From Hormiphora californensis (Eukaryota; Animalia; Ctenophora): DNA of 64,000 nucleotides. The first letter of the stretch is position 1; the number at the start of each line of letters is the position of its first letter. Location: positions 3,162,001 through 3,226,000 of the forward strand of contig CM035350.1 of the NCBI GenBank assembly GCA_020137815.1. The letters are read 5' to 3'. The notes under the pieces were generated by a model, which was not told the DNA's origin, made no database searches, and saw nothing but the letters and a program-made list of their open reading frames with translations. Below, in pieces: positions 9,801 through 12,800 of this stretch. The position numbers and the translations under genes were made by a program.

Positions 9801-12800
9801 AAAAGGTAAATCATTAGCTAGATCTTTATTGGGTATTATACTGCAAGGGGTTGGTGACGCCCGAAGCGTCGCAAACGAAGCCCGCGAAGAGGGGATGGCA
9901 AGAGGGGATGACATTATTAATACAAGAGGCAACTGAGGTAACTGAGGTACAAGAGGTAACTGACCTGTTGGTTAGAATTTGGGCGGTCCCCACCATTTCC
10001 TAAAGTGACAGTAATACAAATCAATCTTGAATCTTGAGACTTGTCGTCATTGTTGGGCTACCAACAATTTGTGTTGCTTGTTCACGCCGTGAACTTCACG
10101 GTATTCTGTTTCTCTTTTATTTCAAGTTTCCACCTGGATATTGTGCGTTGACTGACCTTCCTCTCTCGTTCTCTCTCTTTCTGTGTTTGAACCGCATTGC
10201 AGTGATTCCATGTGATGATAAACCGGCAACCTGATCCTCAACAACGGGCTCTCTCTCTCTCTCTCTCTCTCTCTCTCTCTCTCTCTCTCTCTCTCTCTCT
10301 CTCTCTCTCTCTCTATCTCTCTCTCTCTCTCTATCTCTCTGTCTGTCTGTCTCTCTCTCACTCTCACTCACTCTATCACTCTATCTCCCTATCTCTTTAT
10401 CTATCTATCTTTCTCTTTTTATTTTCGAGGTATCTTCCTCTCGCACTCTCTTCTTTTATTCTGTTACTAGGCTTTGATCCTGGGGTTCATTTTCTATTTA
10501 CACCTCCACCCCATATTCCTGTTTACAAGCGCCCTGTTTTCACTTTTCCATGCGGGGTTGTCCTCTTGCTTTATTCTTGTTGCTCCCTTGAAGCGCAGCA
10601 GCCTCTGTCTATTGACTCTACTTCCATTTCTAAATTTCCATTGTCTTATCCCAGTATGTGGCCCCCTCTCTCTCCATTCCTCTATCCCCCCTCTCTTGCT
10701 CACTCACTTTCTCTATTATGTGTTGTTGGAACAGACGCAGGCTACACTCCACACTTATTGCTTTTTTGTTCTTTCAGTCGCCTGTCTTGAGTTTTAGTCA
10801 TCGCTTGTCTCGTTTAATACTTCTTAACCTTTCTAGATCTCTCTCTCTCTCTCTCTCGCTCTCTCTCTCTCTCTCTCTCTCTCTCTCTCTCTCTCTCTCT
10901 CTCTCTCTCTCTCTCTCTCTCTCTCTCTCTCTCTCTCTCTCTCTATCTCTCTCTATCTCTCTCTCTCCTTGTGAAAACCTCACTCCATTGCTGCCACCCC
11001 CACAAAGGATGGTTACAGGGTAGAGAGGTGGAATGTTGACCATTATCGAAGACACAATTCAGTGTTTCCACAACTGCCTTGCCATGATATTTGGACCTTG
11101 TATTGCCTGTTTCAAGTCTCTCGACTACGAGGTACCCCGGAGGAAAAGAAACCCCAGGAGAGTGTTAGTACTAACAAGAGCTCAGCAGGGAGTGTTGCAG
11201 TGGGGAATGTGATCGGAAAGACAAAGGAAGGGGTACCAATTAGGGTCATGTAGTGCAGAAGAATGTGATGGACACTATACATCTCTACTGAGCTTCTTTC
11301 TGAGGATTTTAATTACCGGAATTACTTTTATCAAGAGAGAGGGGGATTCTGGCCAAGTAGATTGAGGGATAGATTGAGGGGTGTAAAGATGAATGAGGGG
11401 ACAAAGATCAGTATACCGCTCTTTCCAATACTCTCAACATTTGCTGCGTGTGTTGATCAATTCATTGTCGTCGTGTGTACTAGCCTCCTATCTCAACCCC
11501 CCCCTTCCTGTTGTAACTAATATCTGTATACTCGGGGAGCCACATCTCCACTGTTGAACCCCAGCTCCCACTACTGCCACATCGTAACTATCATGGCGGA
11601 CATGGCGACGGGAGTGGCGACGGGCCTATGGGATTTGGTCTGGGTGCACTGGTAAGGGTTTTATGGAGAACGCCCTGAGATATGTGGGAGTGTGTTGTCT
11701 GGGGTGTGCAGATATGATGGATTATGAGATACCGCCCGAGGACAGGGAGCAGGAGAGTGTCAGCACGACCAAGTCAGGAGGAGAGAGTGTTAGGGTGGGA
11801 AATGTTATCGGGAAAACTAAAGAAGGCATGCTGATCAGGGTCAATTAACTGTTTTGCTGAGCTGTCGTATAATTGTATTTTTTAATGGATCTTTCTGGGG
11901 AGAACTCATAAATTAACCGCCATCTTATAAACTGTGTCTTGAAGGTGCGGACATGCATAATGTTCATGGTATATATCATTCATTTTGTTTCTCTCGTTTT
12001 TGAATAATGATAATTTAAATAAAATCATATATGTTTTTAGCTCTCAAGAAATATTTGCCACATTTTCATTCTGCTTCACCACGCAATCTCTGCTTCATTC
12101 TGTTATGTCCTGTTTATGTCCTGTTTTATTTCTCCAGTCAATACCCCTCACTATACCTATTTTACCGCCTATAATAGCTATATAGACCTAGTTTAGTTTG
12201 GGTTGGTCATCTGGGACTATTATAAACAGTCACTCAGACCGGGCGAGAAAGCATAGTGCCGGACCTTTCTGTCGGAATCATCACTAATAGATCGTCGTCG
12301 GTCTATAATACAGACCTAGTGAGAATAGAGTTCAGGTACTGCCTCAAGAGTCTTTTCTGTATGCAGGATAAAGCCCTCAGTACTACAATTGTAGTTTTAG
12401 GACACCTAACACCTTGTCTCACAAAATGCCCATGCTCTCTCCGAACCTTGTGCAACATTCCAGTAATCTAGTATGGCACATAACACCTGTATTAGGTCTG
12501 GTATTATAGGATTATTATAGACCGGCTGGGTTATACATGTTAAACAGGGGGATCTCAAGATACGGCCCTTGTTTATAATACGGCCGTGTGTCTGGATTTG
12601 TTGTACACTCCAGCATGTGCCTTAATAATTAGAGTGGGCACATAGAAGACAAAGAATGAGAGGAAGTTTAAACGCAGCTAGGACAGTTACTTTTTCATGA
12701 AACCTAATTTGTGTCACAGCTACCTGACACACGGCTTGCAGTCTCGTCCGATATAGAGGGAGAGGGAGAAAGCGAGGGAGAGAGAGGGAGAGTGCTTATT

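Follow-up and report, generated by a model that had tools for sequence, protein, structure and literature searches.

An orphan microprotein family in Hormiphora californensis with a paralogous pair nested in an abLIM-type intron

Introduction

The published genome of the pleurobrachiid ctenophore Hormiphora californensis (110.6 Mb in 44 scaffolds) holds 2357 nested intronic genes, many of them parallel to their host, as well as 718 spliced-leader loci, and among its Iso-Seq reads at least 56% carry the leader (Schultz et al. 2021, PMC8527503). Since so many of its nested genes run parallel to the host, a sense-strand nested gene is ordinary in this genome. Here we analyze a stretch of 64,000 nucleotides (nt) from the same species, hereafter the window (assembly GCA_020137815.1, contig CM035350.1, positions 3,162,001 to 3,226,000 of the forward strand), and in it two small open reading frames (ORFs), copy 1 (11033-11253) and copy 2 (11663-11848), which an original prediction made from the letters of the window had singled out as a pair of microproteins inside an intron of an abLIM-type gene. 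All positions below are window positions unless a contig is named.

We find that the two ORFs belong to a real, conserved and unannotated orphan family, and that its nesting in a host intron is a known kind of arrangement in this genome. On balance, we think that the two copies form an old tandem pair within a family of microproteins (~70-84 amino acids, aa) of restricted taxonomic range, that they lie in the sense orientation within the intron of the abLIM-type host that interrupts one of its LIM domains, and that copy 1 is decaying. New here are a third, intact paralog, four clusters of relatives from outside this genome, a frameshift in copy 2 and the loss of invariant residues from copy 1.

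Results

Copy 1 and copy 2 are paralogs shaped by purifying selection

The two copies are made up of the following pieces.

11033-11137, + strand: N-terminal piece of copy 1, with the helix and the Cys patch (MLTIIEDTIQCFHNCLAMIFGPCIACFKSLDYEVP; MLTII...CIACFKSLDYEVP); aligns with the N-terminal half of the family
11137-11253, + strand: C-terminal piece of copy 1 including the stop (PEEKKPQESVSTNKSSAGSVAVGNVIGKTKEGVPIRVM and stop), in the -1 frame; profile match at E = 2.0e-15
11663-11848, + strand: main ORF of copy 2, 61 aa and a stop; every invariant family residue is kept

The ORF listing and sequence comparison identify these as same-strand small ORFs that are paralogous. With copy 2 as the query, a six-frame search of the whole genome (110,691,255 bases, 45 contigs) returned copy 2 itself at E = 2.7e-36 and copy 1 at E = 6.6e-8, so the similarity between them is not due to chance. 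The N-terminal piece of copy 1 was also matched in the profile search of the genome, at E = 2.9e-11.

The differences between the copies carry a clear signature of constraint. Within the shared block GNVIGKTKEG, seven of the ten codons differ and all seven differences are synonymous. Over the C-terminal 32 codons, where synonymous sites are close to saturation, the method of Nei and Gojobori gave a proportion of synonymous differences (pS) of 0.65 and of nonsynonymous differences (pN) of 0.19, which corresponds to a ratio of nonsynonymous to synonymous change (dN/dS) of ~0.14, a pairwise value that averages over the whole time since duplication and is blind to recent loss. Differences at codon positions 1, 2 and 3 number 4, 8 and 16, respectively, and in the 100 nt 3′ of the two stops the likeness is no higher than that of shuffled sequence. 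Purifying selection thus acted over most of the time since the duplication, and both the paralogy and the selection that had been proposed for the pair are borne out by the synonymous codon changes and the pairwise dN/dS.

A third paralog and relatives in other organisms

The six-frame genome search identified a third paralog, intact and 74 codons long, on another chromosome-size contig (G000:C2:8662034-8662258; hereafter the C2 paralog). A profile search of the 110.7-Mb genome yielded no further family loci beyond these three. Outside the genome, we ran word-seeded searches of 5.8 billion proteins, with the C2 paralog and then with the family profile as the query, and scanned 1.84 billion representatives exhaustively with an HMMER profile. 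Full-length family members in these protein collections were limited to four related clusters; each is unnamed and comes from ENA contigs of 504-1537 nt, within marine sequence data.

P0001/P0003: 76 and 77 aa
P0002: 71 aa
P0004/P0008: 84 aa, intact; 90% and ~89% identical to copy 2
P0005: 72 aa; the most distant

The family therefore comprises three loci in the genome and four unnamed clusters outside it. None of the cluster sequences (P0001-P0005 and P0008) is identical to any protein of this genome, so they come from other, related organisms, and these four clusters provide the conservation in relatives on which the original prediction had staked its case. Across the seven intact sequences 29 columns are invariant, none of which has changed in copy 2. 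When JGI metagenomes were scanned with two conserved peptide patterns, there were 173 pattern matches and 0 relatives among them. One further protein drew our attention, P0006, an unnamed sequence of 707 aa from a Logan assembly. It is His-rich and repetitive, with at least five copies of KSMAKS.GEGSRGGHVIGHTK.G.PIY that resemble the C-terminal block of the family; its whole-protein E of 4.9e-6 in the HMMER profile search is a sum over five repeats, each of them weak singly.

The neighborhood of the C2 paralog has features of its own. About 1.2 kb upstream and on the same strand is a spliced-leader locus (L010:3776-3801, + strand, equivalent to G000:C2:8660775-8660800) with one mismatch to the 3′ part of the published H. 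californensis leader. An open frame of 931 aa with integrase-, reverse-transcriptase- and RNase H-like regions, copia-like by eye, lies 1.9 kb downstream (L010:7170-9965, - strand); it is on the strand opposite to the C2 paralog and is a separate element. A BTB-like fragment and a TBC/RabGAP-like ORF, both candidate labels, are also nearby.

The family matches no known family or mobile element

Profile searches of Pfam, PHROGs and PDB sequences with the microprotein family returned no match, in agreement with the earlier remark that no family could be recognized, and the ESM Atlas returned nothing beyond small clusters from phages or bacteria that are unnamed and have few features in common. 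A match to a transposon protein had been named as the finding that would undo the proposal, and we did not find one. The DNA of 10985-12190 matches itself alone in 110.7 Mb, the family has three genome loci, and there is no match to a transposon family or to any other Pfam or PHROGs entry, which together rule out a transposon-encoded protein or a repeat. There is a repeat close by, downstream of the pair and outside both ORFs.

12191-12300, no strand assigned: dispersed short repeat of ~110-120 nt that recurs at ~70% identity in at least 39 other genomic places, on many contigs and both strands

We also considered the synucleins. Copy 1 contains KTKEGV literally, the hexamer of the synuclein repeat, and P0001, P0003, P0004, P0008 and copy 2 carry KTKEG followed by T or M. 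The synucleins differ in having an array of 11-residue repeats that forms a lipid-bound helix, whereas the motif occurs once here, in a predicted beta-hairpin. The Pfam Synuclein family gave no match even at E ≤ 10, and we regard the likeness as a chance resemblance.

Each copy departs from the intact family frame by a single base

In the assembly, copy 1 deviates from the intact family frame by -1 base and copy 2 by +1 base, at the sites below.

11135-11138, + strand: C-run in which copy 1 is one base short of the family frame, from frame reading
11593-11655, + strand: ancestral N-terminal piece of copy 2 (MADMATGVATGLWDLVWVHW, then a premature stop), in a frame other than that of the main ORF
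11641-11650, + strand: zone with one extra base in copy 2, including the GGG run 11642-11644, from codon-by-codon comparison with P0004/P0008

The original prediction held that copy 1 needs a 1-nt insertion in a C-run and took copy 2 to be intact, with no more than a hint of a frameshift there. The reading frames confirm the missing base at 11135-11138: with one added C, copy 1 would read ..EVPPEEKK.., and the equivalent in copy 2 is ..EIPPEDRE.. The supposed integrity of copy 2 did not survive comparison with its closest relatives. P0004 and P0008 begin MAELATGMASGLWDLVLVKGRFFVENVL.., and the matching segment is present in the window at 11593-11652, out of frame with the main ORF. The segment opens at 11593 with the ancestral start codon of copy 2 and aligns both with P0008 and with MAELATGMASGLWDLVLVKG of P0004, an intact protein of 84 aa; removal of one base within 11641-11650 joins both pieces of copy 2 in register with P0004. 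Because the P0004/P0008 N terminus lies in another frame, copy 2 has a frameshift here as well, one base too many, which leaves its first 20 codons out of frame in the assembly. From the sequence, copy 2 may carry an assembly error or a heterozygous site at one base, may be freshly broken, or may be expressed as a 61-aa form from the ATG at 11663.

Copy 1 has changed further. At four positions where the seven intact sequences never vary, it has another residue (G to A, E to G, R to A and L to P), the L to P change sitting in the conserved C-terminal hairpin, and the protein collections searched (5.8 and 1.84 billion proteins) hold no copy 1 ortholog on record. Since the 1-nt deletion, the four replacements and the lack of a recorded ortholog all point the same way, copy 1 is probably a decaying pseudogene in this assembly, from which alone its lesion is known. 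It combines a disabling lesion with relaxed constraint relative to intact relatives, the combination by which pseudogenes are defined.

Single-base differences have to be read against the way the sequence was made. The H. californensis assembly was produced from PacBio continuous long reads (CLR) with wtdbg2, arrow and pilon, heterozygosity for single-nucleotide polymorphisms (SNPs) and indels is 3.2%, and in non-coding regions rich in indels the mapping of short reads is poor (PMC8527503). Given this type of assembly and this heterozygosity, leftover or heterozygous single-base indels are plausible. In a search of the genome for HSP70, one intronless gene was fully open over 655 aa and another had two abutting matches in different frames. 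The latter (G000:C1:6405077-6405335, - strand) matches model positions 1-44 and 44-85 with an overlap of 2 nt and a TAA inside; for a conserved gene, this may point either to a frameshift of one base or to a mistake in the assembly.

The pair is nested in the sense strand of an abLIM-type intron

Two exons of the host flank the pair.

8383-8513, + strand: host exon with the second half of one LIM domain and the first half of the next; phase 0 end, AAG/gtaggt
14365-14512, + strand: host exon encoding the remainder of the LIM domain begun before the intron; Pfam LIM, E = 1.2e-6

Since one LIM domain is encoded partly up to 8513 and partly from 14365 onward, 8514-14364 is an intron. A villin headpiece (VHP) domain is encoded further along at 23476-23643 on the + strand, the strand that also encodes copy 1 and copy 2. 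The LIM exons and the villin headpiece agree with the proposed placement of the pair in a sense-strand intron of an abLIM-type gene, and both copies lie wholly inside this one intron, which is what defines a nested intronic gene.

Possible transcription and a candidate route to a separate mRNA

Three candidate processing signals accompany the pair.

10840-11018, + strand: long (CT)n pyrimidine tract followed by AGs ending at 11007 and 11018, candidate cis- or trans-splice acceptors
11563-11564, + strand: candidate acceptor CCCAG/C, 29 nt upstream of the ancestral copy 2 ATG
12018-12023, + strand: AATAAA, the only canonical one near the pair, 170 nt past the copy 2 stop

The AGs ending at 11007 and 11018 are 26 and 15 nt before the copy 1 ATG, and the stretch that separates the copies has no AATAAA. 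Three RNA runs, each from a different study, all marine or aquatic metatranscriptomes and two of the three oligo-dT, contained 17%, 7% and 6% of the sampled 31-mers of 11020-12040, which lends weak support to transcription of this stretch. The 3′ part of the published H. californensis spliced leader has 640 copies in the genome compared with 0 for a reversed control, and the 64-kb window contains no spliced-leader locus. We hypothesize that a separate mRNA would be cut out of, or started within, the host intron through spliced-leader trans-splicing, and that it would end at the AATAAA at 12018. Because no poly(A) signal separates the copies, the pair may form one transcription unit, possibly a dicistronic one.

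A predicted helix, Cys patch and C-terminal hairpin

The AlphaFold2 model, computed from an 11-row alignment, has a helix at residues 6-36, a low-confidence region at 37-60 and a hairpin at 61-72, with a mean predicted local distance difference test score (pLDDT) of 69 and a predicted template modeling score (pTM) of 0.31; the helix and the hairpin have no fixed mutual arrangement. Hydrophobic residues in the N-terminal helix follow a heptad-like spacing of 3-4. After the helix, every member has at least two Cys within a 9-residue patch, and no Cys column is invariant across the nine sequences. The linker is acidic and rich in Ser and Thr (EQESxSTNKS), and the most conserved part of the protein is the C-terminal VRxGxVIGKTKEGxLIRV[MNT], the predicted beta-hairpin.

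Since the Cys positions drift, S-acylation would suit the patch better than metal binding, and S-palmitoylation is plausible. Proteins such as CDC42SE/SPEC, GAP-43 and SNAP-25 are small S-acylated proteins with Cys clusters. We speculate that an amphipathic N-terminal helix and the Cys patch would be combined with a disordered acidic linker and a partner-binding C-terminal hairpin, and that the product may be a small membrane-tethered adaptor that binds its partner through the hairpin, a role that we put forward with low confidence.

The original prediction assigned a different role, in which an acidic YxxP motif within DYE(V/I)P would be recognized by Abl kinase and Crk/Nck-type SH2 domains. 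This did not hold. Of the nine members, six have Y in the Tyr column, and the C2 paralog has H, P0002 has R and P0005 has I; Pro at +3 is confined to both window copies, P0003, P0004 and P0008, being missing elsewhere in the family. A phosphotyrosine YxxP docking adaptor calls for a conserved Tyr and Pro at +3, and we reject it here.

Weighing the alternatives

Several points weigh against an old, constrained pair of which copy 1 is decaying. Both frameshifts are single-base and lie at or next to short homopolymers in a PacBio CLR assembly of a highly heterozygous animal, and they could be artefacts; both window copies could be dead; the small shares of 31-mers in the RNA runs could come from host pre-mRNA; and S-acylation, the adaptor role and hairpin binding are read from sequence and from a model of moderate confidence with 11 rows only. 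If both frameshifts came from the assembly or from mixing of haplotypes, copy 1 and copy 2 would be intact functional microprotein genes of ~74 and ~84 aa. The positions of the lesions (CCCC at 11135-11138 and GGG at 11642-11644), the sequencing and mapping conditions (PMC8527503) and the frame-broken HSP70 gene elsewhere would all fit this, as would the fact that both out-of-frame pieces remain open and recognizably homologous. However, frames of 1540 aa and 442 aa run uninterrupted in the window and the 655-aa HSP70 frame is likewise open, such that two errors in ~500 coding bases would be unusual, and an indel error does not account for the four replacements at invariant positions in copy 1. 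We consider this explanation unlikely. Somewhat less so, though still doubtful in our view, is that both window copies are relics and the C2 paralog alone is functional, the selection signature being a record of the past only. Each copy is frameshifted relative to intact relatives, copy 1 has no poly(A) signal downstream of it, and pairwise dN/dS is unable to detect recent loss. Set against this, copy 2 has lost none of the invariant residues and over its 61 codons shares 90% identity with P0004, which is intact, an ATG directly follows its shift, and part of the stretch is present in RNA runs.

Two further explanations would make the copies part of something other than stand-alone genes with simple frames. 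That the ORFs are alternative exons of the abLIM-type gene, either first exons that splice from AGG/GTCA donors, as the original prediction had allowed, or in the case of copy 1 an alternative terminal exon, strikes us as very improbable. The same strand is used by the host, and an acceptor ending at 11007, after the long pyrimidine tract, would put 11008 in the frame of the copy 1 C-terminal half and join it in frame to the phase-0 host exon 8383-8513, with the frame open for 92 codons; such a frame match is expected one time in three by chance. GTCA is also a poor donor, no fusion of the motif to a LIM domain occurs among the 1.84 billion representatives, and the third paralog and all relatives are stand-alone ORFs that run from Met to stop. 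Because the Val that follows the donor is invariant and every member has its stop at the same position, two codons on, we disfavor the first-exon idea: constraint persists past the AGG/GTC donor, including in the C2 paralog, which is outside abLIM. Expression of copy 1 by programmed -1 ribosomal frameshifting or by transcriptional slippage at the C-run has, in our estimate, next to no chance of being right. A -1 shift at GUA CCC CGG would indeed give the family-like ..EVPPEEKK.., but A_CCC_CGG is not the canonical slippery site, which has the form X_XXY_YYZ, known cases of transcriptional slippage need longer runs than these four C, and neither copy 2 nor the C2 paralog needs such an event at this place.

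Our preferred reading remains that of an old tandem pair with a decaying copy 1. A broader proposal, which we offer as a tentative possibility, is that these proteins make up an undescribed, ctenophore-restricted, cytosolic family of ~70-84 residues, with a coiled-coil-like helix, a Cys patch for acylation, a phosphorylatable acidic linker and a near-invariant hairpin; that in the window they are expressed from the actin-regulator intron by spliced-leader addition, possibly as a dicistron; and that they act as a lineage-specific membrane adaptor. If true, the locus would be a tractable example of parallel nested genes carved from host pre-mRNA.

Other features of the window

Between 6000 and 12000, the + strand of the window has a strong pyrimidine bias (GC skew to -0.27 and AT skew to -0.27), with long (CT)n arrays such as 10840-10975. 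Pfam scans of the window labeled three further regions.

29023-29871, + strand: ORF with a Myb/SANT-like DNA-binding domain
43147-43968, + strand: RNase H and zf-RVT fragment, likely a retroelement remnant
51697-52803, + strand: rhodopsin-family seven-transmembrane receptor ORF

Discussion

The lineage-specific genes of ctenophores are poorly understood, and this locus adds a clean example, a microprotein family that is conserved but had gone unannotated. It is also a concrete place at which to study the processing of nested genes that share the strand of their host in a genome with trans-splicing. It also has a practical side, as the assembly contains single-base frame breaks within conserved small ORFs, which matters for the annotation of small genes. 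The family has no bearing on tyrosine-kinase signaling in the way that had been proposed, and by itself it is an ordinary orphan family.

Of the systems described so far, the parallel nested intronic genes of H. californensis (Schultz et al. 2021, PMC8527503) are similar in that they are small and lie inside one host intron on the same strand. The pair differs from them in that both nested copies are frameshifted in the assembly, and that a transcript of their own is a prediction from the sequence.

The family also resembles reported orphan microprotein families, which are under 100 aa, have no relative in Pfam, PHROGs or PDB, are found over a very narrow range and show purifying selection among paralogs. 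Most reported orphans lack the support of a paralog or an ortholog, whereas this family has both, through its three loci and its four outside clusters, and it is further set apart by the sharp conservation of its C-terminal 30 residues. The repeat of P0006, KSxxGEGSRGGHVIGHTKxGxPIY, has SSGE..R.GHVIG.TK.G..I in common with that C-terminal block; P0006 differs in being repetitive, it likewise belongs to no Pfam or PHROGs family, and its homology to the microproteins is unproven.

At the level of architecture, the nearest parallel is with small S-acylated adaptors, namely CDC42SE/SPEC and the Cys clusters of GAP-43 and SNAP-25. As in those proteins, the predicted products are short, they place a hydrophobic or amphipathic segment beside a Cys cluster of variable position, and they have no signal peptide or transmembrane segment. 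They differ from CDC42SE/SPEC-type adaptors in that they share no sequence similarity with them and carry no CRIB or other known module.

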